A DNA stretch of 43,116 nucleotides, from assembly GCA_038496445.1 (NCBI GenBank), contig JALMLS010000209.1:1-43116 (forward strand), given 5' to 3'. The notes under the pieces are model-generated. The model made no database searches, was not told the DNA's origin, and saw nothing but the letters and a program-made list of their open reading frames with translations. This document shows positions 5,034 to 43,116 of the stretch, piece after piece. How positions within the stretch are numbered: position 1 is the first letter of the stretch; each line of letters opens with the position of its first letter. Made by a program: the position numbers and the translations under genes. This stretch comes from Trichosphaerium sp. ATCC 40318 (Eukaryota; Protista; Tubulinea).

Positions 5034-5086
5034 AGGATAGTGCTGATAAGAGCCCTATCAGCGCTTCAATTGAAGAAAATGGGCTC
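5024..5086 (+). promoter_or_regulatory. -1 programmed ribosomal frameshift signal (A AAA AAC plus H-type pseudoknot)
   Basis: The slippery heptamer at 5024-5030 lies just before the gag TAG, and the -1 frame is open into the protease. Stem 1 is 5039-5048/5056-5065. Loop GAGCCC (5050-5055) pairs with GGGCTC (5081-5086). Confidence 0.85.
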
Positions 5087-5336
5087 AAGTCACGTGATGA
5101 CATTTCAAAACACGTGACATCACAAACCGCACCTTCACAGATGTCCGGAATCCCTATGAACGCTATTTCCGTATCAGCAACAACTTTTGAAGAGAACCTA
5201 CCTAAAAACGCATCAGCTTGGCATTGTTACGCCAAACATGGACCTGTACACATCAAATCTTTGTGTGACACCGGTTCACCGGTTAGTTTAATTAACTTTG
5301 ATTTAGTTAAGACGTTAGGTTATTTAAAACACTTAA
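5030..5336 (+). CDS. pol: Pol N-terminal part: linker and first half of the aspartic protease
   Basis: LCDTGSPVSLI active-site motif. It joins in frame to the downstream pol sequence if the insertion and one TTAA are removed. Confidence 0.9.
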
Positions 5337-6452
5337 GGGGGCACTCTGAGTGATTTTTGACTAATATTTCAGAACTGATTTTTATGCTTGTAAGCCATTG
5401 TTTTTTTTGATTTTTTTTTTGAAGGGCTCCACAATGGCAAGTTTAATCTGTAGTAAAAGATTCATTTGAATGCAGGGCTTGGTGAATGAGTTTGTTATGA
5501 TGAAAATTTTTCACTTTGTAGTACGGAAGGGTACGGAACCCATCTTTTCATCATATGTCCCCTATACAACTGAAAGCTTATTGTGAAAATATGAGCATGG
5601 TGAGTTATGGTGACTATGAGATGTTAACAATTTTATAGCAAAAAACTAAAGATTTTATCTTTGTTTGCCAACACTTGATCAATTAATGTTTGCCTTTGTC
5701 TGTCATAAGAATCTTTCTTGGCCTTAAAAATGCTTTTAAGGTACTAATTGTGACATTTACTTTTGTTTCACCATTGTCTAAGGTTAATATTTCTCATGTT
5801 TTGAACTCATGGTTTGTGTTTTTTCTTGCTTTCCATATATGTCTCCAGCTGCTTAGAAATACCAGCTTTTTTTTGTTTTTTAATCTTTTTAGTGTGTTTA
5901 ATGCATTTTACTGCATTTTATAACTGTCAGAGGCCTTGCATTTCTTATCTTGTTTTGTAAAGTAATCCAATATTTCTAATTTGTGATTTTGAATAATCAG
6001 TAATTTCAAGACATAATTGCTGCAATACATGCTTGTGCAAATCAACCTTGCTTCATTGTTTTCAACAACAAATGCATGAATACAAAGAGTAAAGTTGGCT
6101 TTATAATTGATAAGTTTAGAAACCCATTTTAGCTTAGCATTGTTGAGAGACTCAACATAACAAATATTTTTTGCCATGAATAAATGTGTTTACTTGTTTG
6201 GTGATAAACTCAATCACCTCAAAATGATGCCTTTACCAGAGAATAACCATTAAATAAGTTAATAAACCATCACTTAACATTTATTTCCCAACAAAAGTTT
6301 TGGCAAAAAAACAATTCACATTTTTGTATTACAAATTGTGAGCTTGAGAGTGAACATAATCAAACGAAACCACTGCCAATCAAACCGCAGCATCATTTTA
6401 CACCATGTGGGTGTCTTTGCACAAATTTTTTTTCTGACTCTAGAGTGCACCC
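5337..6452 (-). mobile_element. Non-autonomous Kolobok-like DNA transposon (1116 bp) with transposase C-terminal remnant
   Basis: TTAA TSD at 5333-5336 and 6453-6456. Termini are GGGGGCACTCTGAGT and ACTCTAGAGTGCACCC (RR...YY ends). The minus strand reads FIHGK/NICYVESLNNAKLKWVSK across a frameshift, resembling the LHG.T.N..ES.N motif. Confidence 0.8.
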
Positions 6453-9400: not shown

Positions 9401-9683
9401 ATTTGCTTATAGAACAGCTGTACACGAATCAACAGGACAGACACCATTTAAGTTGATATATGGACGTGATGCTAGATTTCCTATAGACTTGAATTTCAAA
9501 ACTGGACTAACAAGGACATCACTTAAAGCTACAACAATCAGAGGACAATATTATGAACGATTTAAACAAACACGTGATTTAGCTAGACAACACAAAAGAA
9601 GAAAACGAAGAAGATGGAAGACAATTACAATCAGAGAAGAACAGAAGAAATATTTACAGTTGGAGATGAAGTTTTATTATTAA
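6453..9683 (+). CDS. pol: Pol: second half of protease, dUTPase-like linker, reverse transcriptase, RNase H, integrase core
   Basis: RT motifs RFCADYRAVN, MPFGLANAPATFQ and YLDD; RNase H TDAS...TDH; integrase HHCC and D,D(35)E (VDILG, SDRG, ERMN). Confidence 0.97.
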   Translation, partial: LKPFNLPVFAANKQKLNVAGVLELELAFDDDVKFSPSFLVTKDIPHEIIFGTDTISALGGNLDIDKRVWTLRSGYKVALFDDEDRHTCFVYAPDTFLLPARSQTVLSAPIRDKSKYGIDGRTVITEGIQSGRRRYRAGNSVCTVRKGTAIVTLGNFTEQDIYINKGERIGKLQTVVAAPIAVETKGISEEELEKVPIEDVRWVKEHCKFNKNLKSVQLDRIIRVVAHFRDRFAGKDDKPGLVSNVKHRIEIPEGTKPVHMMPYRVSPQDAKIIKEQLESMLKNEVIRPSKSEWASPVVLVNKNDGTKRFCADYRAVNKLTKKDVYPVPNITDTLHSLAGSVLFSKVDGRSGYWQIENHEESIDKTAFTTKEGLFEFLRMPFGLANAPATFQRFMDVLLSGLRWQCCLVYLDDVIIFSRTFEEHLQHLALVFTRFRDAGYQLKPSKCEFGLEEIEYLGHIVGRYGIKPNPKSVESISKMGKPKGPKEVKRFLGMVGYYSDHIKDLQQITTPLKKLTMKNVPWFWSDECQKVMDLLKKKLMSAPVLAYPDFKKKFILQTDASNDAYSAILSQKGDDGKEHVISYWSKTYTPAEKKYPTYYQELLAVVRGAMHYKHFLQNGLKNDFVTDHKPLTWLMTQKHPKGKCLNWLLDLQQFSFQVIHRAGKNHTNADALTRSPFYACPTIIQKKLTQKINRLQDPQESQITNTPLAVLLNMQAHDNFCSKKILALSNQTLTHGRFTLNPDGILVRLRQNIALPIDNKIPFERFNPKDWLIVVPESLRSDVLYSVHDDITSAHLGITKTYQKLLQRFWWPHMIEDAKDWINSCPQCQKGKKRRQQPHGKPGQFMIFSEPFEQIAVDILGPFHRTDNGNTHIVVFQDYMTKYPEVFAVCDTSAKHIAHLYVDEIICRHGTPGSILSDRGTNLNLSKIISEVNDLLDVERRLTSSYHPQTDGMVERMNSTLLSMIMTLKDKHRSDWDVYLPQLLFAYRTAVHESTGQTPFKLIYGRDARFPIDLNFKTGLTRTSLKATTIRGQYYERFKQTRDLARQHKRRKRRRWKTITIREEQKKYLQLEMKFYY

Positions 9684-10282
9684 GGAAAAGTTACAAGACT
9701 AAAGAAAACCACAAATTGGCACAACGATGGCTAGGACCTTATGCTATAAAAAAGATTAACCCAGTTTCAAAACTATCATACAAACTAGAAGAAATCAAAG
9801 GAGGTATGAGATTAAAACTACCTAATGCTTGGTATCCCATTCAAAGACTAAGACGACATTACAATTCTACATTGAGAAACACCAAACCTATTTTACAGTC
9901 AGAAGATGAAATTCGCGATGATTCTGATGATTATAAGATGGATGATAAGGTAGAAGACAACAGAGATGAACTACAGAACTTTAAAAAAGAGAGGGAGGAA
10001 ATGGATAAAGACGTCTATCCTGAAAATATGAAGAACTTAAAAGATATAATACAACAAATATACAACTCCCTGGAAAAGAAACAATACAAGTCAATCTCAC
10101 GTTTTAAGAAGACAATTACTGATAACTTAGAAACTTTTTGTAGAACAAGTGATCGACACACTGTTCAAAGGATGGTTAAGAAGACAAGATATCAGAACGG
10201 ATTAAGGATGGTTTTATACGCTATTCTTGATGACTTTACAAATCTCTTTGCAAGAGAATTCATTAAGGAGGGAGGAATGTAA
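9614..10282 (+). CDS. pol: Integrase C-terminal region (GPY/F module plus extension), frameshifted from pol
   Basis: FTVGDEVLL and KLAQRWLGPY motifs. The frame changes in an A-rich tract at ~9590-9613, and the stop codon overlaps the 3' LTR start. Confidence 0.88.
   Translation: MEDNYNQRRTEEIFTVGDEVLLLRKSYKTKENHKLAQRWLGPYAIKKINPVSKLSYKLEEIKGGMRLKLPNAWYPIQRLRRHYNSTLRNTKPILQSEDEIRDDSDDYKMDDKVEDNRDELQNFKKEREEMDKDVYPENMKNLKDIIQQIYNSLEKKQYKSISRFKKTITDNLETFCRTSDRHTVQRMVKKTRYQNGLRMVLYAILDDFTNLFAREFIKEGGM
10265..10277 (+). promoter_or_regulatory. Polypurine tract AAGGAGGGAGGAA
   Basis: Purine run immediately 5' of the 3' LTR. Confidence 0.92.
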
Positions 10283-10460: not shown

Positions 10461-12169
10461 AGCGAAACAAGCACGAAACGGTTTTTCAAAATACAGTGTG
10501 AAAACAAAGAAAAACCCTTGGTTGGCAAAACCTATTTTCTTTGTAGTTTGTAGTAATGTAGAACGCTTTGTTTTCGCGGACTATTTTTTAACCCGAAAGG
10601 GAACACAAAGTATTATTATAACTACATTATCAAAACGAGAACCGGCAACGAATTCGTCGACCAGTTTTTACGCCAGGCAGACGCTGTAGTCACTTGTGGT
10701 TTTTTGTGTGATCACATGTTGAAATAGATTTTTTTCTCTTGCGTCTGTTGTTATTTTCTATCTTCCACTGGTTTCGTTTGTAACACTTTAGATTGGCAGG
10801 GTAGGCGATGGCTATTTAAATTGCACTGTTTTTGCGCTAAACAGAACCAACAACACTGGGGCATGAAAACGGCACCAAAGAACTCTTTACGCACCACAAT
10901 GCTACTCTACTCTCCGAAGAACATGTACTACAACAGTTTTTTTCTGCTATTTTGTGTATCTACGACGTAGAAGATTAATAGAGTGCCAACAAGGCGTTGT
11001 ATTGAAATAATTTTAGTGTGCGGTTGTTATTGATCATAAAGAATGCTTCCCTACGTCTCATAGACGTCACCGCTTCGTTCCAATTTGTTTTTGTTGAGGG
11101 TTTGGTAATTTACTGTGGTTACTTTGTAATCAAGCTAACATGCAGTCTGTACATTGCCCTACCACGGCGGATACCCGATATATAGTGTTACTAGTATTGA
11201 GCACTAACAACCATCAGTATTTTGCAACAACTTTTTTTTTGACATGACGTGTGCCTATGATCTTTGTAGCAACCATGAACGCTTCCACCCATTTGTTGTC
11301 TAAACCTTAATGATGTAGTATCCGCAATCCGTGTCATTCAGGTTTGAATAGTTGGATCTAGTTTATATGCTCTCCTCCGTGTACAGCTTCGCTTTGGTAG
11401 CTTGTTTCATTCAATATGAGGCTCCTTGATACGGTAACATATATGTTTAGAAGTCAAAAATTGGTTTATCTTTTTTTTTTTTTTGGGTTTTTTCTTCTTC
11501 GCTTTTTTACTGTGTTTGTAGATGGAGAACTCGCTAAGAAGCATTATGAACATATGCAAAATAAGATAGAGGCTCTTGAGAAACAAAATCAAGAGCTTGC
11601 TAGCAAGGTCAAGAACCAAATGACTGAACAAGAGCTCATGATTAAAAGATTGAAAGAAGAAAATGAACGTCTCCGAGAAAAGACAGTCTGCTTTTTTTTG
11701 TGACGTCTACAAAAACGTTTTCTCGTTCAATGAAAACCAAGTGGAGAAAATATTTTTATTGCAGTTTTATACGCACATATACATGTCGCATTAGTGTGCA
11801 AAGAATCAGGTCAAAAATCGATTTTTCAAGCCAGATATTATGACTTCTTTATGGTTTTTTTGAGCCAAAAACGAGGAATGTTTACAAATCTTTTTCTCAT
11901 TGAAAATACAAAACAGTGTGTATTGACATGTAGATCTGTTGTGGAAAAAATCAGAACTGAACTTGAATGTGTTTGCCATAAATGGTACCTTTCTTATTTT
12001 TTTCTGTATTTTCGCTGTGAAAATTTGTTGTGTCATTGGCAGGATGTTATGGATTTATTTGAGCACACTGACCATTCAAAGATACCGACGGTAATAATAG
12101 TATTTACATGCTGATGTCTCAACCTTTTAGTCGTTATGGTGACCGTTACAGGTCCATCGCTGCAGTATT

Positions 12170-24560: not shown

Positions 24561-27500
24561 TAATTTGTTACCTTATGGGAGCGTTGATAGAAACGCTTCA
24601 CATTGAAATGACAAAAGTATGGTTTTGAGTGTCGCTAGCGCTATGTAACACTGCGAAAGATAATCACAGCGAAAGGCTTGAGGTTTGTTAGCGTCGTAAA
24701 GGCTTGCTGTCGCTGCGCCTAATTTTTTTCTTTTCGAACCTCTGCGCGTCTAAGTGTAACTACATAGTGAAGGTAGCTAAGACTTCAGTAGTATAGTGTT
24801 AATTGTGAAGCTAGCAAGTGATTTGACGAGATGTCGCTCAGAAATCATCAGAAAAGCTTACAGTGATAGAGCGAAACAAGTGCGAACCGGTTTTTCAAAA
24901 TACAGTTGTGAAAACAAAGAAAAACCCTTGGTTGGCAAAACCTATTTTCTTTGTAGTTTGTAGTAATGCAGAACGCCTTGTTTTAGCGGACTATTTTTTA
25001 CCCGTTCCAAGCAACACACTGTATTATTATAATGACGTTATCATAACGAGAACTGGTAACACAACGAATGTGTTGAGCAGTTTTTACACCAGGCAACGTG
25101 GTAATCGTTGGTTTTTTTTTTGATCACATGTTGAGATTTTTTTTGTTCTGTGTTGTTGTCACTATGTAGAAGTTAACAGAGTGCCAACAAGGTGTTGTAT
25201 TGAAATAATTTGAGTATCGGTTGTTATTGATCATAAAGAATGCTTTTTTCCCTCGTCTCATACACCGCTTCGTTCCAATTTTTTGGCTATGTAATAGATC
25301 AAGCTAACATTCAGTCTTTTCATTGCCCTACCGCGGCGGATACGCGATATATATATTGCGTTACTAGTATTGAGCACTAACATAACAACTATCATCAGTA
25401 TTTTGAACAACTTTTTTTTTTTGACATGACGTGTGCCTATGATCTTTGTAGCAACCATGAACGCTTCCACCCATTCGTTGTCTAAACCTTAATGATGTAG
25501 TATCCGCTGGTCGGTGATGACATGTTCATAGCAATCCGTGTCATTCAGGTTTGAATAGTTGGATCTAGTTTATATGCTCTCCTCCGTGTACAGCTTTACT
25601 TTGGTTATTTGCTTCATTCGCCTAGATAGTTAACCAAAGCGAAAGTCTTGACTAACCCACAGCGCTACGTGCCTTACACTAATGGTAAAAAGAACTATTT
25701 TTTCTGTTTTCTTCCCAGTGTTGCTTGGGCACGTACAATATGAGGCGCCTTGTAATATGCTGATATTATGTTTATAAGTCAAAAATTTGTTCATGCTGCT
25801 TTTTTTTTGACGTCTACAAAAACGTTTTCTCGTTCAATGAAAACCAAGTGGAGAAAATATTTTTATTGCAGTTTTATACGCACATATACATGTCGCATTA
25901 GTGTGCAAAGAATCAGGTCAAAAATCGATTTTTCAAGCCAGATATTATGACTTTTTTATGGTTTTTTTGAGCCAAAAACGAGGAATGTTTACAAATCTTT
26001 TTCTCATTGAAAATACAAAACAGCGTGTATTGATATGTAGATCTGTTGTGGAAAAAATCAGAACTGAACTTGAATGTGTTTGCCATAAATGGTACCTTTC
26101 TTATTTTTTTCTGTATTTTCACTGTGAAAATTGTTGTGTCACTGGCAGGATGTTATGGATTTATTTGAGCACACTGACCATTCAAAGATACCGACGGTAG
26201 TAATAGTATTTACATGCTGATATCTCAACCTTTTAGTCGTTATGGTGACCGTTGCAGGTCCATCGCTGCAGTAATTTATGCAGTTACAATATGTTCCTTT
26301 GAAATTTGTTCATGTTTGCATAGCTCTTCTCTAGTTTTATCAACCTTATTATTTGCTCCTTGTAACTCTAGTTCAATTCCATGTTACACTAGCGCTCTTG
26401 TATAGTCGCCAGGGATATTTATTGTCCATGAAATCAGCTTACAGTAATGTAAGGTTGGTTTTTGGAATTGTCAGTTTGTTGGATGCTGGTTACCTTTTGG
26501 TCAGGGAAACACTTCACAGTACACTACAAAAAGTACACAGTGTGCTCTCATACCTACTTCTTACACTTAGAGAAGTATAAACCATGATATTTAGGAAAGA
26601 ATGAAAAAACACTCATCTTGAGACTTGTCACTCCTGACAAACCTATAGGTTTGGTTACTATGTGAGTGGTTCCCAATCTCAAGTATAGCCAGCTGATAGA
26701 CATTTAGCACAAGTTTACAATAGTATAAAAATATGCAGTAAACCTATGGATGTATATCCTTTAAGTACGCAAACAAGTCTTTTACCTTGAACTAGCTACT
26801 AATTATGAAAGGCACACCCACGACAAGTTAAGAGGACAGCCAATAAAACCAGGCTACCAAAGTCTTCTGAAACAAACCTTTATTCCTTTCATAGACACGT
26901 GAAATTTTCAGGCGTCAAGTTGCACTTGATGTTACGTCAAAATTGCATAAATTTGACACATGTCAAAATGTGTCAACATTTTTGTCGATGCCATTTTGCG
27001 GGTACATTAGGATGTGAATGCCTGGTGTTACGCGTTTTTTTCAATCCAATTGGAGAGCTGCAGTACCGAAAGCACTAATTAGGAATAAAAACAACGACTA
27101 AAGTATGATTTCAAAGAACAATGAGCGCTAGAATGTGACAAATGTTAGATTTGATTTCTCTCGCCACCATTTCTAACCACAATACCAAGTTCATGTGTAA
27201 TCGACTACAATTCAGAGGAATAACCATAGTAGTGTTAAAAGTCCACCGACTTTCTAAAAACCAATACCATAGACAAGAACAGACGCACACAATAACTGTT
27301 GATCGTTGGGCAAAATAAGTCTATCTAGTCGTTGTCTACCAACAGCGAACTTTAAACGCTATAACGACGATCTAACTAACGCAATAGGTACATAACCAGC
27401 AAAGTGCAATGCAACCAAAATTAATTTACTTGTAAACGCACGGAACGTGTTTTCTCTGCTAGAGTGCTTGTGCTTAGCAACTTTATCGTCTTGGCGCGTA

Positions 27501-28979: not shown

Positions 28980-30023
28980 TTTCAAGAATGTAGTCGCATT
29001 GTATGGTGCATATTAATGTCAATTTCAGTAGCCCAGGTGCCGGCACTCATCGCTTGTAATCCGGCCGGCGTGGTGTTTGACAACTCAAATAATAAGCTTA
29101 TCAATAGCTGCAAAGTTGTGATGATAGAAGTTGTGAAGAACTGGTTTGTCATTCCGTGGAGAGCCCAATTTTTACAAGCTGAGCTTTAGTATTTTCGTGA
29201 CAATTTACAGATTTTTTCATAGTCGGAAGTTTGTATTGGTTCACCAGTTTTCCAGCCATATCCAAGTAACCTCCACTCCATAGTCTTACCGTTTTCATTT
29301 CTTACGCATGAATGATACAACTTGACCATGGGTTTGTTGCTATTCTCCACTTATTTTAAAGTAGATTATTTCCAAGTTTTCAAATAGTTTCTTCTTGTGG
29401 GTGCTTGGAAGAGCAGTAGTAACGTCTCCAGTTTTACTTTGTTGAGAACGCCCAGTTGTCCAATCTACAAACTGATCCACCATGAATCTCGAATCCAGTA
29501 CCACATGAGGCGCAAACTTATAACATTGTTCAAATTTTATAATCAATTTTGTTGCAGCATCTACAGGAGAAACTGGTGTGCCGCGACCCCAGTGAGCAAT
29601 GATACCGAGTATGTAAGGCTTTTTACCATGCTTGTCAGAATACAGCATGTACATAGATCATCAAACCCTTTAGATGTGGTTTTCCTTTGAAACACTAAAT
29701 AACATCATCATAATTTCTTTCGCCACTTCTTTGCTCCCAAAGCCACATTGTTCCTATAAACTTCATAACTTCCTTAGGCTTGATTGCAGTGTTCCGCTAT
29801 GTGTTTTTTTCGACCTTGCGCCTTGAACCCTGCCATAAATGTTTGTTGGTTTTTTTTTGTTTGTTCGATCACGTGATTCCAATTTTTTTTGAATCAAACG
29901 CGAATAGATATGTTTCGTGTAAGAATACACATCATCCGTCCTTTTGAATAACGTAAAGAAACTCATGTGTTTTTCAATAAAGCTTAAGCTTGCATACGTC
30001 GCAGTTTCAAATGCATCCGTCAT
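28980..30023 (-). pseudogene. piggyBac-like (DDE_Tnp_1_7) transposase remnant (copy B)
   Basis: Minus-strand motifs in the expected order: FKGKPHLKGLMIY, PHVVLDSRF and KPVLHNFYHHNFAAIDKL, corresponding to KP..G, DN.F and YN..MGGVD..D. Frameshifted. Confidence 0.7.
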
Positions 30024-30547
30024 TATCTTGCTATCCCTACACCTTTTCTAGTTGGCAATAGGGTTGGCAGTAAAACAACTTTAAGTACCACATGGCAAAG
30101 AAAAACAATTATTTCTAGTGCTGTTAATCACTCGGTCTTAAAGTTGTGTCGACAAACACTGTCGTTCCTGAAAAAGAACGTGGAAGCTATTTCCAAGCGC
30201 GGGCATCATTATAATAAGATGTGAGCTCAAATTACCTTTATCATATGTAACACAAGACGTACTATGGGTTATTGATAAAGTAGCTTCTTAATCAATGATG
30301 AGTCCATCAAGCAAGAATACTGAACGCTTCAAGAAAGCACAGAGAATTTGAAACAGGGAACAACCTTCTGTTTCCATTATGACTGAGTACTGGTGGTCAG
30401 TGACAACTGGTATACTTTCAAATTTGATTAAGTATTAACTGTTAGGGTACGGACCAAAGCCATTGACTGAAGCGAGTGTTACAAGAAAGGAATCCTATTT
30501 CAGCAGTACATTTGCAATTCTTATCTTATTGCTACTGCTGGATTACG

Positions 30548-30808
30548 CGGACCCACGTTTTTTCCGAATTTTTCGAAAGAAAAAATTCGAAAAAATAGAA
30601 TTCGTAGAAAGATGCATAGCTAGGGCAGTCCACTAAACTAGAAAGCGCCTGGTTCACTTACGGTCGGGTCTTCCCTGTGCTCGGAACTAGAAACCGACCT
30701 TTGCTCACATATAGTGATCCATTGGTGGGTATAGGCATTCGGTTTTTGTATCGAATTCTATTTTTTCGAATTTTTTCTTTCGAAAAATTCGGAAAAAACG
30801 TGGGTCCG
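30548..30808. mobile_element. 261-bp MITE-like element with perfect 57-bp terminal inverted repeats
   Basis: 30548-30604 is the exact reverse complement of 30752-30808. The element is absent from the paralogous site at ~17818-17850, and no TSD is visible. Confidence 0.85.
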
Positions 30809-31595
30809 GTTTAGAGTCGGCTTTTACATTGGTTTGTTAAAACGAGTAGTAGGCTGTACCAACCAACCTATGTAAAAGTTGTTGCAAAAGTTCTGATTCA
30901 TTCGTTACATGTGCTCTTATGACAGCTTTGGATAACTTTAGAAGATAGCTCAATATCATATTGCAACGAACGTATTGTATTACGACAAAAATCACTTCGT
31001 TTGCTCTTTAAACCTGCAATGTAACCAGTAGGCTCTTTGCACTAATTATAATTAGCGTGTAGATAGCGTTTAATGGCGTAATTAGTTGCCGTTTCATACT
31101 TTATGTTTGTTAATCTTTCGCTCCGGTACGCTATATTTTAATTGCTACGATACGTGATAAAAGCGTCGGATAGAAAAAAAACCTTGTAAACAAATATAGT
31201 GAGCAAAAATCTATCTTGCCCACGTGATTTTCAAAAAAAAAGTAAATGATATCCTGTAGCGTGGCGAGATAGAGAAACTTGCTCAACGAATTCGCTGCGC
31301 GTTACCGGTTCTCGTTATGATAATGACATTATCGTAACGCGAGTGCGTTGCGTGTGGAATCTGATGGCAAACCAGTGATTTAACCCTCTTTATACTATAC
31401 GTGTAGACCATGTAGCCAATTTTTTGGCAGTAGTTGTAGTTTAAAAGGAACGGCAAAAAAAAACGTCAAAAACTACAAATGGCGCATAATTTTAAGCAAA
31501 CGAACCGTATTTTTGGGTTTGTATTGCGCCATAATGTACTATCTCCGTATCTTCTCATCGTACGTGTGAAAAGGCTTTGTATATGAACGAGGAGA

Positions 31596-31830
31596 TATGT
31601 TGAACGCAAACAATGTACACCGAGCCATAACACAAGTAATTCTATGAACCGTCGGCGAAACTTAAATCCATTTTACCGTACAATCAACACTGGTTACAAC
31701 GCTTCATGACGGAGCCACATATCGAAGAATCATCAGAATTAAAAGGTAATAGAAGCGAATCTTCGATCTGCCTCTGTGTTTATTAAAATTCTTCAATAGC
31801 CGAATTGGCGCAGCTTCAATGCAAATACCC
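31596..31830 (+). repeat. Upstream region and first exons shared with 41682-41900 (conserved promoter/5' region of the ankyrin gene family)
   Basis: Diverged direct repeat atgttgaacgcaaacaatgtacaccgagcc...acaacgcttcATG lies in front of both plus-strand ankyrin genes. Confidence 0.8.
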
Positions 31831-34665
31831 CAATATTACAACATGTACCTTCCTTGGTTTAAACACGTTCTCTTTTTCTAAAAACACTGCTCCTTTAGGT
31901 GATGTGCTGAAACAAAAACTACATACTCTTGAGACAGCAAAAGACATTCTATTCTACTCAGGTTTGTATTTACCAACAGTGTAAGTATCAACCCAATTTG
32001 TAGCTCGCAACAATCTCCATGTTGTCGTAATGTTATGCATCCAACCAAGATTGAACATTGAAGCCAAAGAAAACAATGGACGTACTGCTTTAATTGTTGC
32101 AGGTATGATAATGCTTAACCATAACAACATCTGTTACTCACATACACTTTAATTGTTAGCCATTAAAGGACATGATAATGTGATAAAAGTATTACTTGAA
32201 TCAGGAGCCAACATTGAAGCCAAAGAAAACAATGGATGTACTGCTTTAATTGATGCAGGTATATATACTTGATTTGAAGTCACTTAATTCATATTAGCAT
32301 TATTTGGACACAACCCAGTTTTGCAGACTTTATTGAAACAAACTACAGACATATCATTAATAACTATAAAATGGAAACAAGCTTTAATTAAGATACTAAA
32401 ACAGGTGGTTGATGATGATCCTGCATTCATTAATGTGTTTGAAACTCTTTTGACACTGTTTCCAAATGACCAATGCAGTCGTGGACTATGGTTATCATGT
32501 GCACACATGAAAGAGATACCACAGTGGCGACTCAATCTTGCAAAATGGTTGCAATACTTGGTATGGCCTTTTTACCAACAATTAGGCACTAATCACACAA
32601 AGCCAACACGTCCATATTTTAAAGTTGCAATGCAAAAAGGCATTTGCCATTTGATTTGTACATACAGTCCCATGTTTGTACAGTCTTCGGTACAAACACA
32701 CAAAATACAAACGTACATTAACTTATTTTGTTTAATTTAGAGCTTTTGGTTACAGCAAGGAGAGCTGATGGAAGGAATTCTGTCCGACTTATCAGATAAA
32801 ATGTGGAGTAGTACTACACAGCCTGGGTCTGTCATTGAACTGTGTGTAAAAGAAGGATGGTGTACAAATTCTCTTCAAAAAGTACCCAAGCAAGATAGTA
32901 TGTGTTTAGTTGGTATTTCTTTTATTAACATTATACAGCGTTTGCTTGCTATGATTGTTCTCAATATGGATTGTATTTGTGCAGTTATTGTGCTACTCAA
33001 CATAATCAAACCCACGTATTTGTTTTGTATTTATTTTTGCTAACAGTTTGAGTAGAAGCTCTCAAAGCAAATTGGTAGTTTCAAAAAATGTGAATGCAAT
33101 GCTTGCAATCACATACTCACTAATACCTTCTCACCAAATCATGGAGGTAAACATTCCACAACAGGTAAAAAAACACTGTTATTTCAATAGCTGACAATAA
33201 CACTTTTAGGATTAAAAAGTGAGACATCATGGGACTTAAATCCAAGATTACATTATGCCCACACCTGGGATAGATCCAACAACAAGTGAGTAGTTACACT
33301 CGTATTAACTCATGTTTAATTGTTTTTGTCAAACAAAAAAGGGGTACAATTAAAAAAGCAACGCACTATAGAACACTGAATCTTCTTGATTCAAATAAAA
33401 ATGATATTGTAGCCAAGAGAGAACTAGAGTTTCTTCGCGAACAAATGTCAACGATGCACGGCTATGATAAATATGATATTGTAGAAGCTCATCTTGTTTG
33501 CAATGATGTGTTGACTCAAAACTTTGGCACATACAATACCATGCTGAAGCAAAGACACCAGTATGTATACTTATTTAATTGCATTCATAACTGAGCTGTT
33601 TTAATTAGAGACCTACCAGACACATGGAACAAAAAAGATCACAAGCACAATAACCAACAAAAGTTGCCAAACATGCTGTAAATCTCATACAGAACTTGTG
33701 CTTGTATCCATGACGTTTCTGATCAGGTACATTTGCCTACATGTGCATTGTTGACCAAATAATCAGCTACCAGTTGTATTAATGGTTCACGGAACAACTC
33801 GTGAAGCCGCTTGGAGTATTGTAAAAGCTGGATTTGGAGTGATAAGTTCGTTGGATGCTGGATACTATGGACAAGGAATCTACTTTACAGTATGTGCTTT
33901 TTAAAAAGTCACCATCTTACTTGCTTTTTTGAAATAGCACAGCATTAGGTATGCCTGTTCATACGATACATCTGGTACAAATAAAAAGACACTTGTGCTT
34001 AGTTTGGTTACACCTGGAAATGTATATCCTGTACACAACTGCAACCAATCGCACTATTAATTTGTTTATTTACAAAGCATTGATAGGTTACAGAAAACCC
34101 TCAAGATGACTCCAATCTTGTTGGTAAGCCAATTAAAGCTGGATATCAAAGCCACTATGTATTGGTAAACAAGAACGGACAGGTGTTAAACCAAAATAAA
34201 ATAGACACAGCAGTATATGATGAACTGGTTGTAGCTCAAGGTAGTGATTACAATTGATGTACTTGTTGACTAAGTTGTGATTTTAGATGTACAGACTGTT
34301 GCTCGTTACATCATCACAGTTGTGCGAAAACCAAACCAAGAGAAGAAAAGAGCGAAGAAACCGTCTGAGAAAACCAACAAGCAATCATCTGCAACATCAG
34401 AGGGTATTGGTGAATTTGGTTCTGATGACTTGTCTGATTCTGATGATTGTGACAACTTTACCTCTAAGCGGTACAAAATAAGTGTGCATCAATCACTTTC
34501 TTACTTACTTTTGTGCAAAGACAATTATGGGCCTCTAGCTATTTGAATGAGCGCCAAATACAACCAACTGCATATGACAAGCTATTGGAAGAAAACAAAA
34601 GATTACAACAAGTTTACACAAAACTTTTTGAAATTAACACTAGACTAAACCAGCAATTAAAGTAA
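31706..34665 (+). pseudogene. Multi-exon ankyrin - UBR-type zinc finger - PARP/ART - coiled-coil gene, copy A (one exon frameshifted)
   Basis: Spliced by eye from ATG 31706 (MTEPHIEESSELK...): ANK exons, CTNSLQKVPKQDTFACYDC...LCSYCATQHNQTH...CECNAC, HGT (33788), GQGIYFT (33881), YDELVV (34222), stop at 34663-34665. Deletions of 4 and 2 nt relative to copy B in exon 33609-33726 expose TAA at 33679. Confidence 0.8.
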
Positions 34666-36035
34666 CTAAAATTGTCAACACTTGCGCAACACAAACCTCA
34701 GACTGGCTTGTATTTATTACTGTTACAACTGAGAGTCTATATTAACATAAACACTTTTTATCTTGCTTTTTGTTTGCACACATCTAGTGTAGAAACTACA
34801 TTACTATACAATGGTTTTTTTACCAAAATCCTTGTGTTGCCAACCAACATCTTGTTTGATAATTTTGGTTTTCATGTTTGGCAATTGCATCAATACCAAT
34901 GCAGATACTGTAATGTAAAGTAAGATAGTCAAGAGTATCTGTAATAGGTATATTCTTGTATTAATCGTCATGAGTACTTTAAGTGTGATTTGTGCAACTT
35001 TCAGCATTGAATACAAAGTTTGTATTCTTCAACAGTAGCCAATTAAAAGCTCAGTTGTGATCTATATGATTCCAATGTATGTTTACAGAATGTGGTATTG
35101 AATTATCCAGGATATTGATTTCAAGAAAATCACAGATATCAATGGTGAAAATGATCTTGAAGAGGAGGTCGACAAGCGATATCTTGACATCCATCAAAGC
35201 CCTTCAGATCACACTTTGTCTCCAACTTATTCTTTGTGCAAGAGAACACGTGATGACGATTCACGTATTCCTGTAGTTTTTCTCAGTGATTTGAAAGTTA
35301 CAAATTCATTAGTTCTCTCAGCCACTGAGTGTTATGCTATTTCTTCAAAAGTTTAATTCGCCTAGCCTTCAAAGTTTGCAATGTTAAACGTGTGAGCTCT
35401 GTTGAGATTCACATCTGGCCAGTTGGGCTTAGAGCATCTTGACAACTATATTGATAGTTGGAGCAACTTGGATGACTACATTGAACACAAGATCAAGGTG
35501 GGTCATAATGCTGTCTCAAAGAGACACTGATATCTGTACTCTTCCAACTAAAGACAACGCTCTAGGATTTTTAGTAAAACCCAATTGTAAAGCAAGGCAT
35601 ATCATTGACTTAAGCATGCTGAAAGGCGATGCAGTCAACTACTTTGTGGAACCCTTGTTCATGATGGTTGCTTTGAAGGCTGCTATCAGGTTTATGTTTG
35701 AGTTGGTTCAGGATATGCTATGGCAATGGCGGATATAAACAAAGTGTATTGTTGTATTCTGACATCTTACAGCAAAAACTTCTAACTATTTATTCTACTG
35801 TTGGCTAAGTAACTTTCCAATCTCAAAAATTAAACAACTTTTACCAACCCCCTCTTAGCAAATTTCCAAATTCAATAGGCATTGGCAATTGGTTTCATTT
35901 ATTCTTTGATAGATTGTATTCTTAGTCATGGCATAGGAAACATTGTTGGAGTTTATTACTTTGGTATCAATCTCAGCTAGAACATGTTTACGTTATTATT
36001 TGAACTGCTTCTTTTTGCATTTATTAATTTGATGT
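32054..36035 (+). repeat. Left arm of large inverted repeat (palindrome)
   Basis: Reverse complement of ~36325-40323, with mirrored ORFs such as 35439/36622, 34672/37437 and 33286/38773. Confidence 0.95.
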
Positions 36036-36300
36036 TCAAAGCTGTGTTATCTTCCTCTAATTTTAGAATGGCTTGTGTAAGTTCTTCATTTGCTTTCAGC
36101 AGTTGTTGTTCTAAATTGCCATTCAAATAGCTAGAGGCCCATAATTGTCTTTGCACAAAAGTAAGTAAGGAAAGTGATTGATGCACACTTATTTTGTACC
36201 GCTTAGAGTTGGTTTTCTCAGACGGTTTCTTCGCTCTTTTCTTCTCTTGGTTTGGTTTTTGCACAACTGTGATGATGTAACGAGCAACAGTCTGTACATC
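35977..36300 (-). pseudogene. Orphan last two exons of an ANK-PARP paralog with a different C-terminal coiled coil
   Basis: DVQTVARYIITVVQKPNQEKK...TNSKR | intron | YLNGNLEQQLLKANEELTQAILKLEED...NVNMF*. It lacks the acidic segment found in copies A and B. Confidence 0.75.
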
Positions 36301-36324
36301 TAAATCACAACTTAGTCAACAAGT

Positions 36325-39300
36325 ACATCAAATTAATAAATGCAAAAAGAAGCAGTTCAAATAATAACGTAAACATGTTCTAGCTGAGATTGATACCAAG
36401 TAATAAACTCCAACAATGTTTCCTATGCCATGACTAAGAATACAATCTATCAAAGAATAAATGAAACCAATTGCCAATGCCTATTGAATTTGGGAAATTT
36501 GCTAAGAGGGGGTTGGTAAAAGTTGTTTAATTTTTGAGATTGGAAAGTTACTTAGCCAACAGTAGAATAAATAGTTAGAAGTTTTTGCTGTAAGATGTCA
36601 GAATACAACAATACACTTTGTTTATATCCGCCATTGCCATAGCATATCCTGAACCAACTCAAACATAAACCTGATAGCAGCCTTCAAAGCAACCATCATG
36701 AACAAGGGTTCCACAAAGTAGTTGACTGCATCGCCTTTCAGCATGCTTAAGTCAATGATATGCCTTGCTTTACAATTGGGTTTTACTAAAAATCCTAGAG
36801 CGTTGTCTTTAGTTGGAAGAGTACAGATATCAGTGTCTCTTTGAGACAGCATTATGACCCACCTTGATCTTGTGTTCAATGTAGTCATCCAAGTTGCTCC
36901 AACTATCAATATAGTTGTCAAGATGCTCTAAGCCCAACTGGCCAGATGTGAATCTCAACAGAGCTCACACGTTTAACATTGCAAACTTTGAAGGCTAGGC
37001 GAATTAAACTTTTGAAGAAATAGCATAACACTCAGTGGCTGAGAGAACTAATGAATTGTAACTTTCAAATCACTGAGAAAAACTACAGGAATACGGTGAA
37101 TCGTCATCACGTGTTCTCTTGCACAAAGAATAAGTTGGAGACAAAGTGTGATCTGAAGGGCTTTGATGGATGTCAAGATATCGCTTGTCGACCTCCTCTT
37201 CAAGATCATTTTCACCATTGATATCTGTGATTTTCTTGAAATCAATATCCTGGATAATTCAATACCACATTCTGTAAACATACATTGGAATCATATAGAT
37301 CACAACTGAGCTTTTAATTGGCTACTGTTGAAGAATACAAACTTTGTATTCAATGCTGAAAGTTGCACAAATCACACTTAAAGTACTCATGACGATTAAT
37401 ACAAGAATATACCTATTACAGATACTCTTGACTATCTTACTTTACATTACAGTATCTGCATTGGTATTGATGCAATTGCCAAACATGAAAACCAAAATTA
37501 TCAAACAAGATGTTGGTTGGCAACACAAGGATTTTGGTAAAAAAACCATTGTATAGTAATGTAGTTTCTACACTAGATGTGTGCAAACAAAAAGCAAGAT
37601 AAAAAGTGTTTATGTTAATATAGACTCTCAGTTGTAACAGTAATAAATACAAGCCAGTCTGAGGTTTGTGTTGCGCAAGTGTTGACAATTTTAGTTACTT
37701 TAATTGCTGGTTTAGTCTAGTGTTAATTTCAAAAAGTTTTGTGTAAACTTGTTGTAATCTTTTGTTTTCTTCCAATAGCTTGTCATATGCAGTTGGTTGT
37801 ATTTGGCGCTCATTCAAATAGCTAGAGGCCCATAATTGTCTTTGCACAAAAGTAAGTAAGGAAAGTGATTGATGCACACTTATTTTGTACCGCTTAGAGG
37901 TAAAGTTGTCACAATCATCAGAATCAGACAAGTCATCAGAACCAAATTCACCAATACCCTCTGATGTTGCAGATGATTGCTTGTTGGTTTTCTCAGACGG
38001 TTTCTTCGCTCTTTTCTTCTCTTGGTTTGGTTTTCGCACAACTGTGATGATGTAACGAGCAACAGTCTGTACATCTAAAATCACAACTTAGTCAACAAGT
38101 ACATCAATTGTAATCACTACCTTGAGCTACAACCAGTTCATCATATACTGCTGTGTCTATTTTATTTTGGTTTAACACCTGTCCGTTCTTGTTTACCAAT
38201 ACATAGTGGCTTTGATATCCAGCTTTAATTGGCTTACCAACAAGATTGGAGTCATCTTGAGGGTTTTCTGTAACCTATCAATGCTTTGTAAATAAACAAA
38301 TTAATAGTGCGATTGGTTGCAGTTGTGTACAGGATATACATTTCCAGGTGTAACCAAACTAAGCACAAGTGTCTTTTTATTTGTACCAGATGTATCGTAT
38401 GAACAGGCATACCTAATGCTGTGCTATTTCAAAAAAAGCAAGTAAGATGGTGACTTTTTAAAAAGCACATACTGTAAAGTAGATTCCTTGTCCATAGTAT
38501 CCAGCATCCAACGAACTTATCACTCCAAATCCAGCTTTTACAATACTCCAAGCGGCTTCACGAGTTGTTCCGTGAACCATTAATACAACTGGTAGCTGAT
38601 TATTGGGTCAACAATGCACATGTATAAAATGTACCTGATCAGAAACGTCATGGATACAAGCACTGGAGTTCTGTATGAGATTTACAGCATGTTTGGCAAC
38701 TCTATTTTTGTGATTATTGTGCTTGTGATCTTTTTTGTTCCATGTGTCTGGTAGGTCTCTAATTAAAACAGCTCAGTTATGAATGCACTTGTAGTAATAA
38801 TTACAAACATACTGGTGTCTTTGCTTCAGCATGGTATTGTATGTGCCAAAGTTTTGAGTCAACACATCATTGCAAACAAGATGAGCTTCTACAATATCAT
38901 ATTTATCATAGCCGTGCATTGTTGACATTTGTTCGCGAAGAAACTCTAGTTCTCTCTTGGCTACAATATCATTTTTATTTGAATCAAGAAGATTCAGTGT
39001 TCTATAGTGCGTTGCTTTTTCAATTGTACCCCTTTTTTGTTTGACAAAAACAATTAAACATGAGTTAATACGAGTGTAACTACTCACTTGTTGTTGGATC
39101 TATCCCAGGTGTGGGCGTAATGTAATCTTGGATTTAAGTCCCATGATGTCTCACTTTTTAATCCTAAAAGTGTTATTGTCAGCTATTGAAATAACAGTGT
39201 TTTTTTACCTGTTGTGGAATGTTTACCTCCATGATTTGGTGAGAAGGTATTAGTGAGTATGTGATTGCAAGCATTGCATTCACATTTTTTGAAACTACCA

Positions 39301-40323
39301 ATTTGCTTTGAGAGCTTCTACTCAAACTGTTAGCAAAAATAAATACAAAACAAATACGTGGGTTTGATTATGTTGAGTAGCACAATAACTGCACAAATAC
39401 AATCCATATTGAGAACAATCATAGCAAGCAAACGCTGTATAATGTTAATAAAAGAAATACCACTAAACACATACTATCTTGCTTGGGTACTTTTTGAAGA
39501 GAATTTGTACACCATCCTTCTTTTACACACATTTCAACAATAGACCCAGTTTGTGTAGTACTACTCCACATATCATCTGGTAAGTCGGATAGAATTCCTT
39601 CCATCAGCTCTCCTTGCTGTAACCAAAAGCTCTGATATAAAAAAAAACAAGTTAATGTATGCTTGTATTTTGTGTGTTTTGTACCGAAGACTGTACAAAC
39701 ATGGGATTGTATGTACAAATCAAATGGCAAATGCCTTTTTGCATTGCAACTTTAAAATATGAACGTGTTGGCTTTGTGTGATTAGTGCTTAATTGTTTGG
39801 TAAAAGGGACATACCAAGTATTGTAACCATTTTGCAAGATTGAGTCGCCAGTGTGGTGTCTCTTTCATGTGTGCGCATAATAACCATAGTTCACGACTGC
39901 ATCGGTCATTTGGAAACAGTGGCAAAAGAGTTTCAAACACATTAATGAATGCAGGATCATCATCAACCACCTCTTTTAGTATCTTAATTAAACCCTTTTT
40001 CCATTTTACAGTTATTAATGATATGTCTGTAGTTTGTTTCAATAAAGTCTGCAAAACTGGGTTGTGTCCAAATAATGCTAATATGAATTAAGTGACTTCA
40101 AATCAAGTATATATACCTGCATCAATTAAAGCAGTACATCCATTGTTTTCTTTGGCTTCAATGTTGGCTCCTGATTCAAGTAATACTTTTATCACATTAT
40201 CATGTCCATTAATGGCTAACAATTAAAGTGTATGTGAGTAACAGATGTTGTTATGGTTAAGCATTATCATACCTGCAACAATTAAAGCAGTACGTCCATT
40301 ATCTTGTTTGGCTTCAATGTTGG
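36325..40323 (-). repeat. Right arm of large inverted repeat (palindrome)
   Basis: Mirror of 32054-36035. The inner ~2.3 kb is almost identical and the outer part is visibly diverged. Confidence 0.95.
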
Positions 40324-41610
40324 CTCCTGATTCAAGTAATACTTTTATCACATTATCATGTCCATTAATGGCTAACAATTAAAGTTAATGTAACAGATGT
40401 TGTTATGGTTAAGGGGGGACGCTGAGAATGGAATGACCTTAGCCCCACAGGCATCTTCGGGCTTGTAAACCCATCTAAAATCGCGTAAAACGCTGAAAAA
40501 ATAGGATAGCGAACTGCGTAGATTGATTACTTGAGTTCAAAGCCGAAATTTCATTTTTTTTCTCAACTTTTTGACCTTAATTACACAGATTGAAACAACT
40601 TTTAAGCTATTCTTCCACTATTGCACCACTTGGAGACGCATTTTAGGTGGTGTAGAGCAAATTCGTTATTTTTTTTTGCTTTCAAATTGAGACTTCTTAT
40701 TTGAAAGTGTACCCATAGCATGTACTACGTGTGTAGATGCTATGGGTAACATAGTTTTGAACAAATGTGCTTTTAAACAGAAAGATTGAAAAATGCAGTC
40801 GTTTTTTGAAAAAAAAAACTTTTGCAACAAAAAAACATCACAAAAAGGCACACGCTAAAAGTTGGGTTTTTCAAAAGCCCTCATGTCAAAGATATAGGCC
40901 CAAAATTTGAGCCGATTTGAACAATTTCTGCACATCTCAGCGTGCCCCCTTAAGCATTATCATACCTGCAACAATTAAAGCAGTACGTCCATTATCTTCT
41001 TTGGCTTCAATGTTGGCTCCTGATTCAAGTAATACTTTTATCACATTATCATGTCCATTAATGGCTAACAATTAAAGTTAATGTAACAGATGTTGTTATG
41101 GTTAAGCATTATCATACCTGCAACAATTAAAGCAGTACGTCCATTATCTTGTTTGGCTTCAATGTTGGCTCCTGATTCAAGTAATACTTTTATCACATTA
41201 TCATGTCCATTAATGGCTAACAATTAAAGTGTATGTGAGTAACAGATGTTGTTATGGTTAAGCATTATCATACCTGCAACAATTAAAGCAGTACGTCCAT
41301 TATCTTTTTTGGCTTCAATGTTGGCTCCTGATTCAAGTAATACTTTTATCACATTATCATGTCCATTAATGGCTAACAATTAAAGTTAATGAGTAACAGA
41401 TGTTGTTACAGTTAAGCATTATCATACCTGCATCAATTAAAGCAGTACATCCATCATTTTCTTTGGCTTCAATGTTGGCTCCTGATTCAAGTAATACTTT
41501 TATCACATTATCATGTCCTTTAATGGCTAACAATTAAAGTGTATGTGAGTAACAGATGTTGTTATGGTTAAGCATTATCATACCTGCAACAATTAAAGCA
41601 GTACGGCCAT
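37695..41610 (-). CDS. Multi-exon ankyrin - UBR-type zinc finger - PARP/ART - coiled-coil gene, copy B (six tandem ANK exons, 5' end missing)
   Basis: The reading frame stays open after splicing from the ANK array to the stop at 37695, with the H-Y-E triad (E codon 38137-38139). No N-terminal exons or start codon were found beyond ~41610. Confidence 0.75.
40117..41610 (-). repeat. Tandem array of ~152-156-bp units (99-nt ankyrin exon plus intron)
   Basis: Exons at 40117-40215, 40273-40371, 40966-41064, 41118-41216, 41274-41372 and 41428-41526, plus a partial one from 41584. All are phase 1 with near-identical introns. Confidence 0.95.
40413..40949. mobile_element. 537-bp Kolobok-like MITE in an ankyrin-array intron
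   Basis: TTAA TSD at 40409-40412 and 40950-40953, TIRs GGGGGGACGCTGAGA and TCTCAGCGTGCCCCC. Sister introns show the empty TTAA site. Confidence 0.88.
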
Positions 41611-41791
41611 TTATTCTGCTTCAAACGAAACCTTACCAATATTGTGCGACAATATGTATCTGATCCGGGGGAGCCGGGAGCTATGTTGAACGCAAACAAT
41701 GTACACCGAGCCGGAACACAAATAATTCGATGAACCGTCGGCAAAACTTAAATCCTTTTTACCATACAATCAACACTGGTGACAACGCTTC

Positions 41792-43116
41792 ATGGCAGAG
41801 CAGCTGGCGATTGAATGTACGCCGCTAACATTATATTATTAACACTTGGGTTATTAAATATTTCGTCACAGCCGAATTGGTAGAGCTTCAATTAGTTTTC
41901 AGTAACATTACAACAGGTACGTAGCCTATTCCGAGTTAATATCCTTGTTTAATGTTTTACTAGCTGATGAACTAAGGAACAGTATCCGTAATCAAGCGAT
42001 AGCCAATGATATTCTGCTCTATTCAGGTTCGGTGCCTAAATCTTGCTTGTAACCAATAAATATAGTGCTTTGTGGCCTGGCTAGTACTGTGATAATGTGC
42101 ATTTACCAGGAGGTAAACATTGAAGCTTCGTTGTACGACGGACGCACAGTTTTACATGTTGCAGGTACCTCGGATTTGCGCATCACCAAACGCACTGACT
42201 TGAACTATAAAGCCACAACGGGACACTTCAATATAGCTCAAATATTAATCAACTCAGGCGCAAGCATTGAAGCCAGAGATAAAGACGCGTGCACACCTTT
42301 ACATCTTGCGGGTATGTTAGATTAAATAATGACTCCAATTTACGGTTCTTAGCGAATGAAGGACATATTGAAGTAGTTCAAATATTGCTCAATTCAACAG
42401 CGGATTTTGAAGCGACGGATAACAAGGACGGACACCTCTTGTTTGCGCAGGTAATTGTAATCTTGTAACTACTAAACTAATTCGCACTTCGTATCTTAGC
42501 CAATAAAGGACACAAAAAAGTTTCTGAGATGTTATGCCAGGCGATGATAAGTACTAAAAAAGTAGGAAAGGATGGACGTACTACTTTACACAATGCAGGT
42601 TAACCTAAGTTATACAGGGTGTTAAGTGGATTAACTTGATTCCAAGCTCGTAGCGGACAAATTACAATTGTGGAAATGCTACTCAACGCAGGTGTAGATG
42701 TAGATGCTACAGAAAATAATGGATTCACACCCCTACATGATGCAGGTATATTAGTTTACTAATAATAATTATAAAACGTACGCTGACATCCTATACCAGC
42801 GTTTCATGGACACGACAACATTGTACAATTGTTACTGAAAGCAAACGCAAACATACAAGCGTCGAATATCTATGGACACAAACCGATTCATTGCGCAGGT
42901 ATTGTCGTCTTTCAAGTTTTGAGTTTAAGTCTTAAATTAGCTCAAAATGGGCACAGTGAAGTTGTTGAAACATTAATCAAATCAAGTGCGAACATTCACG
43001 CTACAGATAAAGATGAAAACACAGCTTTACATACAGCAGGTATCCTAAACTTCTACATAATGTACTAGTGACTTTAATTCACAAAATTCGGTAGCCATCG
43101 AGGGATACAGTGAAGT
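41792..43116 (+). CDS. Multi-exon ankyrin repeat gene C (one repeat per exon), runs off the window
   Basis: ATG 41792 (MAEQLAIE...) with N-terminal exons homologous to gene A, then seven diverged phase-1 ANK exons (GRTVLHVA, CTPLHLA, FTPLHDA, NTALHTA). Exon 42353-42450 is 98 nt, which is either a 1-nt deletion or a sequencing error. Confidence 0.85.

Follow-up and report, generated by a model that had tools for sequence, protein, structure and literature searches.

Probable convergent copies of a large ankyrin-PARP gene family in the amoeba Trichosphaerium sp.

Trichosphaerium sp. is a marine amoeba with a published draft genome of 70.87 Mb, 37.7% G+C and a mean intron length of 75 nucleotides (nt) (PMC10521059). 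We analyzed the entire contig JALMLS010000209.1 of strain ATCC 40318 (43,116 nt, about 37% G+C; hereafter the window), which belongs to an assembly of 70.3 Mb in 642 contigs. The region 31706-41610 of the window holds two copies of one gene arranged tail to tail, copy A on the forward and copy B on the reverse strand. They are probably best explained as two recent convergent copies from a family of about 100 genes that encode ankyrin repeats (ANK), a linker, in some members a zinc module, a PARP catalytic domain and a coiled coil, and whose products would act as targeted ADP-ribosyltransferases.

An earlier note, made from the sequence alone, had read 31706-41610 as a single gene for a protein combining ankyrin repeats, a UBR-type zinc finger, a PARP domain and a coiled coil, hidden by short introns. 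Self-alignment of the window does not bear out a single gene and reveals an inverted duplication instead. The note had overlooked this duplication as well as the defects in each copy, and had not recognized the finger as a cassette that is optional among the roughly 100 genes of the family.

The locus is probably an inverted duplication

The left arm of the duplication (32054-36035) aligns with the right arm (36325-40321) in the orientation 40321-36325, with 98.2% identity over 4001 nt. Identity is patchy: blocks of 100% are interspersed with blocks of 92-96%, the inner arms match at every position for about 3 kb, and the arms differ in a diverged island at 33566-33738. Between them lies a palindrome spacer of about 290 nt (36036-36324), which contains on the reverse strand an orphan 3' end of a family gene, the third such end at the locus. 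There, an open reading frame (ORF) at 35977-36264 (-) encodes a coiled-coil tail of another type, like the tails of paralogues on contigs C259 and C94. The spacer region is covered from 36092 to 36400 by RNA contigs; those used here were Logan contigs from four runs, which belong to three studies, aligned to 31500-36400. Past copy B stands gene C (41793-43116, forward strand), another family member that is truncated by the contig end and has exons 1-2 like those of copy A followed by a different ankyrin array. An array homologous to that of gene C is found upstream of a PARP body on contig C259. The 5' region of copy A (31591-31715) is 91% identical to 41677-41801 on the same strand.

An inverted duplication might also arise as a fold-back chimera of amplified DNA, in which case a single true copy would exist here. 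The draft genome was indeed built with Canu from nuclear DNA that had been amplified with REPLI-g (PMC10521059), the inner arms show no difference over their 3 kb, and the contig is only 43 kb long. However, the arms carry substitutions, both in the outer blocks of 92-96% identity and in the diverged island, and they are unlike in ankyrin number and in a 594-nt insert, which is not expected from folding one template. The same tail-to-tail layout moreover recurs on contigs C259, C241, C83 and C328, where, in at least one pair, the 3' parts are nearly identical and the 5' parts have diverged. Given these differences and the recurrence of the layout on other contigs, we consider exchange between the arms of two real copies the likelier reading and a fold-back artifact improbable.

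Downstream of the two copies, the arms each take in a further 1.2 kb or so (34700-35930, mirrored by 36430-37660). These segments contain short ORFs only, on both strands, and have nearly no RNA contig cover in the four runs.

The catalytic domain belongs to the PARP family

Membership in the PARP family is solid. Four transcript-derived paralogues score above the PF00644 cut-off of 26.7 bits (P0156, 35.7; P0004, 36.1; P0001, 36.5; P0002, 30.9 bits), and the match of P0156 and P0004 spans profile positions 48-197, almost the full length. Paralogue ORFs that read through in-frame introns reach the cut-off at most. A search for contigs encoding P0004 gave no record. In the window, the exon carrying the catalytic His and Tyr is the only one to match PF00644 on its own, with an E value of 0.0022 (copy B; the exon is identical in copy A). 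An exhaustive search returned 329 relatives at E <= 0.001. In an alignment of 88 of them, Tyr170, Tyr177 and Glu245 do not vary, and the HGT motif (G140, T141) is nearly invariant. When compared with the PDB, the family profile built from these 88 relatives matched PARP13 (E 5.7e-9) and also PARP10, PARP12, PARP4, PARP14, PARP2 and PARP1; a phmmer search with P0004 gave PARP10 as its sole PDB match (E 0.57). The HGT...GIYF stretch aligns with the matching stretch of PARP10, and the catalytic Glu is placed by the PF00644 match and by its invariance rather than by a printed alignment.

An AlphaFold model of residues 150-466 of P0002, computed from the 88-row alignment, reached a predicted local distance difference test (pLDDT) score of 83.9, as against 37 from the single sequence. 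Foldseek matches of this model in the PDB were, among the 50 listed, all PARP catalytic domains (E about 1e-10) and included PARP12, tankyrases 1 and 2, PARP1, PARP3 and PARP15. Their template modeling scores by target ranged from 0.38 to 0.75, with tankyrase, PARP12 and PARP15 between 0.6 and 0.75 and PARP12 at the top. The structure rows listed from the ESM Atlas were likewise all PARP clusters; a feature search of the same resource returned PARP clusters at 0.86 and added no information.

Taken together, the profile scores of the paralogues, the PDB profile matches and the fold model bear out the PARP domain with a His-Tyr-Glu (H-Y-E) triad that had been read from the sequence. The catalytic Glu is retained, as had also been proposed, in the YDELVV motif of exon 15 and as the invariant Glu245 of the 88 relatives. 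Judged by these residues, the protein is apparently an active ADP-ribosyltransferase. Alternatively, the domain could be a scaffold without catalytic activity, like those of PARP13 and PARP9, and the inactive PARP13 is in fact its nearest solved sequence match. PARP13, however, is without the catalytic His and Glu, while here the His, both Tyr and the Glu are kept, with Tyr and Glu invariant and HGT nearly so across all 88 relatives, and a silent scaffold seems to us correspondingly unlikely. As to the product of an active enzyme, the H-Y-E triad alone cannot distinguish mono- from poly-ADP-ribose: PARP3 and PARP4 keep the triad yet act as mono-transferases.

Splicing of short introns assembles the protein

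Copy A comprises 17 exons on the forward strand (31706-34665). All 16 introns have GT-AG borders, measure 39-57 nt and keep the frame, with one exon frameshifted. The short-intron splicing suggested earlier is confirmed by GT..AG joints in RNA contigs of the four runs, which are found at introns 32103-32159, 32561-32602, 32690-32740, 32898-32938, 33016-33055, 33165-33209, 33286-33341, 33561-33608, 33890-33937 and 34471-34520. Four further introns, including the one between exons 1 and 2, are backed by matching contig ends or loose ends, so that at least eleven of the 16 introns have RNA support of one of these kinds. For the intron between the second ankyrin exon and the linker and the intron ending at the 32004 acceptor, the support consists of contig starts only, the acceptor AG matching by chance. 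As predicted, splicing yields ankyrin repeats, a Cys/His finger, an H-Y-E PARP domain and a coiled coil, to which a helical linker is added.

The gene begins with an ATG in exon 1 (31706-31745), which is open and ends in a GT donor. One RNA contig joins it to 31800 (loose end at 31798), and an unspliced RNA contig is present in this region too. Exon 2 (31800-31961; AG/GT borders, phase 1-1) encodes an N-terminal region without a Pfam match. Two ankyrin exons of 99 nt each (32004-32102 and 32160-32258) follow with one repeat per exon and are connected in all four runs (joint 32100>32158). The next exon (32298-32560; RNA contigs from 32296) encodes a capping half ankyrin repeat and the helical linker, and is joined at 32559>32602 to an exon of 29 amino acids (32603-32689). 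The latter is 83% identical to residues 69-86 of P0002 and leads on through the joint 32688>32740, both joints being of the GT..AG type. The earlier reading was right in its introns but lacked this 29-amino-acid exon, and it needs correction at two further points: the linker exon begins at 32298, where it includes the capping half repeat, and the second finger exon extends to 33164.

Three exons together supply the Cys/His peptide. The first (32741-32897) ends in C-x5-C (..C.KEGWC..), the first two finger ligands; finger exon a (32939-33015) contributes C-x2-C-x8-C-x2-C-x3-H-x3-H and finger exon b (33056-33164) C-x-C-x2-C-x-H. The joints on both sides of exon a, 32897>32939 and 33015>33056, occur as GT..AG splices in RNA, and a 45-nt intron follows exon b. 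A short exon (33210-33285; ..NPRL..W.RS..), 67% identical to residues 139-162 of P0002, precedes the catalytic domain and is joined at 33285>33342 to the 72-amino-acid exon in which the PARP domain starts (33342-33560). The joint 33560>33609 then leads to exon 12 (33609-33726), which is broken in copy A.

Exon 13 (33767-33889), preceded by a 40-nt intron, carries the catalytic His (HGT) and Tyr (GIYFT). The HGT...GIYFT peptide is contained in this single exon and recurs on the reverse strand at 38595-38473. Exon 14 (33938-34030; bordered by both ends and loose ends of RNA contigs, at 33938 and 34032) contains the second conserved PARP Tyr (Tyr177). Exon 15 (34087-34240; contig ends at 34087 and 34240) contains GYQSHY and the catalytic Glu, and the YDELVVAQ peptide quoted in the note is found at its end and at the end of its counterpart, 38274-38121 (-). 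Exon 16 (34287-34470; 76% identity to residues 205-255 of P0156) encodes the last PARP strand and a basic, then acidic Ser/Asp-rich tail, and exon 17 (34521-34665) the coiled coil and the stop codon; the joint 34469>34520 between them is present in three runs. RNA contigs of runs X4 and X8 also join position 31758, just past exon 1, to 34222 within the Glu exon, skipping 2.46 kb. This joint could be an assembly chimera, come from a paralogue that is truncated, or represent an unusual isoform.

Transcript proteins provide a further view of the 3' part of the gene. Placed one at a time on the MMETSP transcript protein P0156, exons 11-17 of copy B abut to the residue, with 76-100% identity overall and 100% for exons 12 and 13. 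P0155 is the P0156 transcript with the 40-nt intron before exon 13 retained, while in P0156 this intron is spliced. That ankyrin repeats and PARP domain occur in one mRNA is seen in the JGI transcript scaffold L020, which encodes about seven ankyrin repeats, the linker, the PARP domain and the coil.

The ankyrin repeats are recognized even on single copy B exons of 33 amino acids, which score above the Pfam cut-offs for both Ank (PF00023; 23.7 and 25.2 bits, cut-off 21.1) and Ank_4 (PF13637; 24.3 and 27.6 bits, cut-off 22.7). Copy A has two ankyrin exons and the cap, copy B six and a decayed remnant. No Pfam family matched the linker (about 170-200 amino acids). Pfam also gave no SAM domain on any exon or on P0001 or P0002, in line with the earlier reading, and the space between ankyrin repeats and PARP domain is filled by the unrelated linker. 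Behind the PARP domain, the sequence passes through a basic stretch and an acidic Ser/Asp stretch into about four coiled-coil heptads, a pattern that agrees with the proposed C-terminal coiled coil. Coils of paralogues reach about 200 residues and match the ZapB, bZIP and KASH coiled-coil families.

Copy B and the integrity of the two copies

Copy B begins with a decayed, frameshifted ankyrin remnant, recognized by its reading frames (41584-41650, reverse strand like all that follows). Six full ankyrin exons are defined by their translations and splice sites (41526-41428, 41372-41274, 41216-41118, 41064-40966, 40371-40273 and 40215-40117). The array is interrupted by a 594-nt intron or insert (40372-40965), the other introns being 57 nt long. 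The linker (40077-39815), the 29-amino-acid exon (39771-39685), the C-x5-C exon (39631-39475), finger exon a (39434-39358) and finger exon b (39317-39209) are open and have AG/GT borders. The PARP and tail exons are all open as well: 39163-39088, 39031-38813, 38758-38635 (the intact form of exon 12), 38595-38473 (His and Tyr), 38423-38331, 38274-38121 (Glu), 38074-37891 and 37839-37695.

Either copy may nevertheless be defective, and neither looks complete in the window, because copy A has a TAA before its His-Tyr-Glu residues and copy B is without exons 1-2. Compared with copy B, exon 12 of copy A has two gaps, the first of 4 nt and the second of 2 nt, and the TAA lies between them. Upstream of copy B we found no counterpart of copy A exons 1-2; the sole 5' homologue, 41677-41801, is on the forward strand. 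Copy B starts within its frameshifted remnant, and gene C begins only about 180 nt away.

It is a serious possibility, although not the one that we favor, that both copies are dead or dying, so that the family is real and this locus yields no full-length enzyme. Besides the gaps and the TAA upstream of the triad in copy A, every RNA contig over its exon 12 gap has the copy B form, with 4 additional letters. Copy B, in turn, is without exons 1 and 2 and has no in-frame Met in its ankyrin exons, and the spacer holds an orphan 3' end. On the other hand, 19 of 19 full copy B exons are open, and exons 12 and 13 are identical to those of an expressed transcript. An upstream exon of copy B has possibly been overlooked, and the indels of copy A could be assembly errors, though they are not of the homopolymer type.

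Several points weigh against the view that the locus holds two copies of a gene for a targeted ADP-ribosyltransferase. No single exon of the window attains the PF00644 cut-off, the best reaching 18 bits, and both the structure model and the best profile scores derive from paralogues and not from the window's own protein. The modeled paralogue P0002 is about 28-83% identical to the body exons of copy B and has no real match to exon 12. The RNA contigs do not distinguish between this locus and its near-identical paralogues. The source DNA was whole-genome-amplified (PMC10521059), a process able to create inverted chimeras. Finally, copy A has its in-frame TAA and copy B no recognizable start.

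A putative zinc module with 12 ligands

All finger-bearing copies examined conserve 12 Cys/His ligands, which are distributed over three exons in the family pattern C-x5-C / C-x2-C-x(5-8)-C-x2-C-x3-H-x3-H / C-x-C-x2-C-x-H, one part per exon. The C-x5-C part is conserved in 12 of the 12 copies; the four Cys and two His of exon a are invariant in 8 paralogues, and the C, C, C and H of exon b in 9, where the residue inside C-x-C varies (E, A or Q). Twelve conserved ligands suggest that each module would bind three zinc ions. The two finger exons form a cassette found in about 25 of about 107 family copies. Members without it join the flanking exons directly, and some paralogues have decayed finger ligands. 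Word and cluster searches for a transcript-derived protein containing the finger found none, returning finger-less members or 5'-truncated ORFs.

The earlier note had called this finger UBR-type, likening its Cys/His spacing to the UBR box of UBR7/FBXO11, and had raised the possibility that the protein links the sensing of substrates or N-degrons to ADP-ribosylation. The module does resemble UBR boxes (PF02207; UBR1/2, UBR7) in size, in the order of its Cys and His and probably in holding three zinc ions: C, CxxC, CxxC, H..H and, about 12 residues on, F/K-x-C-x-C run parallel to UBR boxes. The stretch H-K-L-S-K-Q...F-K-K-C-E-C is similar to H-I-L-S-E-Q...F-R-C-S-C in the UBR box on contig C128 of the same genome. 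Aligned by hhalign to a UBR profile made from the genome's own boxes, both finger exons fall in the correct order (P 6.3e-4 for exon a; P 0.11, collinear, for exon b). A ZZ control, however, performed equally well with exon a (P 5.1e-4), and reached P 0.017 with exon b in an alignment that is not collinear. The B-box could not be used as a control because the whole genome contains no PF00643 match.

Profile searches failed to link the two in either direction. PF02207 did not match finger exons a and b, the C-x5-C exon or a 111-amino-acid ORF of paralogue L015 that joins the C-x5-C exon to finger exon a, at E up to 10, a test whose power is low because the domain is split across three exons. 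In a six-frame scan of the genome PF02207 identified seven UBR loci, none of them in the ANK-PARP family. Conversely, profiles A3 and A4 of the family finger exons recovered about 25 family copies but, up to E 10, not one of the seven UBR loci. The ligand geometry differs too. UBR boxes have a last loop of about 11 residues, and acidic residues beside C-x-C hold the N-terminus in UBR1/2; here the last loop has 2 residues, the positions beside C-x-C are variable, the His pair is spaced differently and two Cys lie upstream. Ligands are lost in some paralogues, and about 80 family members do without the cassette. Since the profile tests fail and the ZZ control equals UBR, the likeness of the finger to UBR appears to be no greater than that among generic Cys4 fingers. 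The UBR-box assignment is therefore not supported, and nothing was found in support of N-degron sensing. We would give a UBR-like fold about one chance in three, and we think it unlikely that the finger is a true UBR box through which the sensing of N-degrons or substrates is coupled to ADP-ribosylation.

A family of about 100 genes

The 72-amino-acid PARP exon has 107 matches in the genome, on many contigs and often in close pairs on opposite strands. On contig C575 (L014, G000:C575:1500-11499; 13 kb), a head-to-head pair is 97% identical to window positions 30001-33885. The copies on C575 are 97% and 95% identical to the window at 30-34.6 kb, and their exon 12 is of the type of other paralogues. 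This pair may represent a haplotig or exon shuffling between paralogues.

Outside this organism the same catalytic subtype is combined with different partner domains; in one case, P0154, it follows ankyrin repeats. P0003 and P0005, from a public metatranscriptome, contain two tandem copies of the subtype per protein. A viral origin was considered and rejected for lack of evidence, IMG/VR containing two weak matches of about 60 residues.

The published description of the Trichosphaerium genome mentions neither ankyrin nor PARP (PMC10521059). Surveys of PARP architectures describe several independent ANK-PARP fusions and no UBR-PARP (PMC2964712, PMC4245714). The proposal of a non-tankyrase ANK-PARP family thus holds in that the architecture is not an annotated family, but SAM-less ANK-PARP proteins arose several times before (PMC2964712, PMC4245714). 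New here are the extent of the expansion and the presence of a coiled-coil tail and a zinc cassette, whereas the SAM-less ANK-PARP combination is known elsewhere.

Comparison with known PARP proteins

The tankyrases (PARP5a/5b; clade 4, ANK-SAM-PARP) likewise have an N-terminal ankyrin array before an H-Y-E PARP domain. They share with the proteins described here a partner-binding array and a self-association module, both putative in the latter, and their catalytic domains are among the best structural matches. They differ in that self-association is provided by SAM, where here a coiled coil follows the catalytic domain; in addition, a linker and in some members the zinc module stand between ANK and PARP here. 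Tankyrases have 15-18 repeats (PMC2964712), compared with 2-7 or more here.

The best PDB profile matches (E 5.7e-9 to 1e-4) are to PARP12, PARP13 (ZAP) and PARP10 of clade 3, the mono-ADP-ribosyltransferases, and the catalytic domain is nearer to clade 3 and tankyrase than to PARP1. A zinc finger upstream of the catalytic domain is a feature in common with clade 3. However, clade 3 proteins have CCCH RNA-binding fingers and WWE domains, with another residue in place of the Glu (PMC2964712); the proteins described here retain the Glu, have no WWE and carry a finger of another kind.

Non-tankyrase ANK-PARP proteins, including some from Amoebozoa, are also known from clade 1A with the architecture ANK-WGR-PRD-PARP (Dictyostelium ADPRT3; C. 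elegans PME-5, clade 1 according to PMC4245714). Unlike in clade 1A, WGR (PF05406) and PARP_reg (PF02877) gave no match on the exons or on P0001 and P0002. Two further proteins or groups combine ankyrin repeats with PARP outside the tankyrases. In P0154 (540 amino acids, from Logan runs) the repeats are followed by the same catalytic subtype (GYYGQGIYFT, PGYQSHY), and neither zinc module nor coil is present; a mollusc cluster in the ESM Atlas has the architecture Ank-MIB_HERC2-PARP. For neither are paralogue numbers like those of Trichosphaerium known.

Possible mechanism and significance

A plausible mechanism would start with the ankyrin array, which would hold a protein partner. The catalytic domain would transfer ADP-ribose from NAD+ onto this partner or onto the enzyme itself. 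The coiled coil may pair or multimerize the enzyme, much as SAM does in tankyrase, and the zinc module, where present, could provide an added binding surface.

Tankyrases are the best-known ankyrin-PARP fusions and choose their targets via the repeats; the amoeba would have reached the same logic independently, and with about 100 genes. If active, the family would offer a large natural set of differently targeted ADP-ribosyltransferases for studying target choice. It is also a candidate innate defense repertoire in a protist. More speculatively, and with little confidence, we suggest that the approximately 100 genes might form a germline "catch-and-tag" repertoire. Variable ankyrin arrays, together with the 12-ligand, three-zinc module in a quarter of the members, would recognize foreign or altered proteins, for example those of giant viruses that trade genes with the amoeba. 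The PARP domain would mark these proteins with ADP-ribose, and tail-to-tail pairs exchanging between their arms would spread and shuffle the variants. For annotation, a prokaryote-style ORF track misses the family entirely, and individual copies may be broken.

Other elements in the window

An LTR (long terminal repeat) retrotransposon resembling Ty3/gypsy elements was read from ORF translations at 3963-10282. Its Gag ORF (3963-5033) contains two CCHC knuckles, and its Pol ORF of 1053 amino acids contains a YLDD reverse-transcriptase motif and an integrase zinc finger. Elsewhere in the window, a 300-nt direct repeat (11693-11992 and 25800-26099; 99% identity) occurs 14.1 kb apart. The two units could be the LTRs of a large element or the product of a segmental duplication, and near-identical ORFs (11794-12114 and 25901-26200) are found at them.

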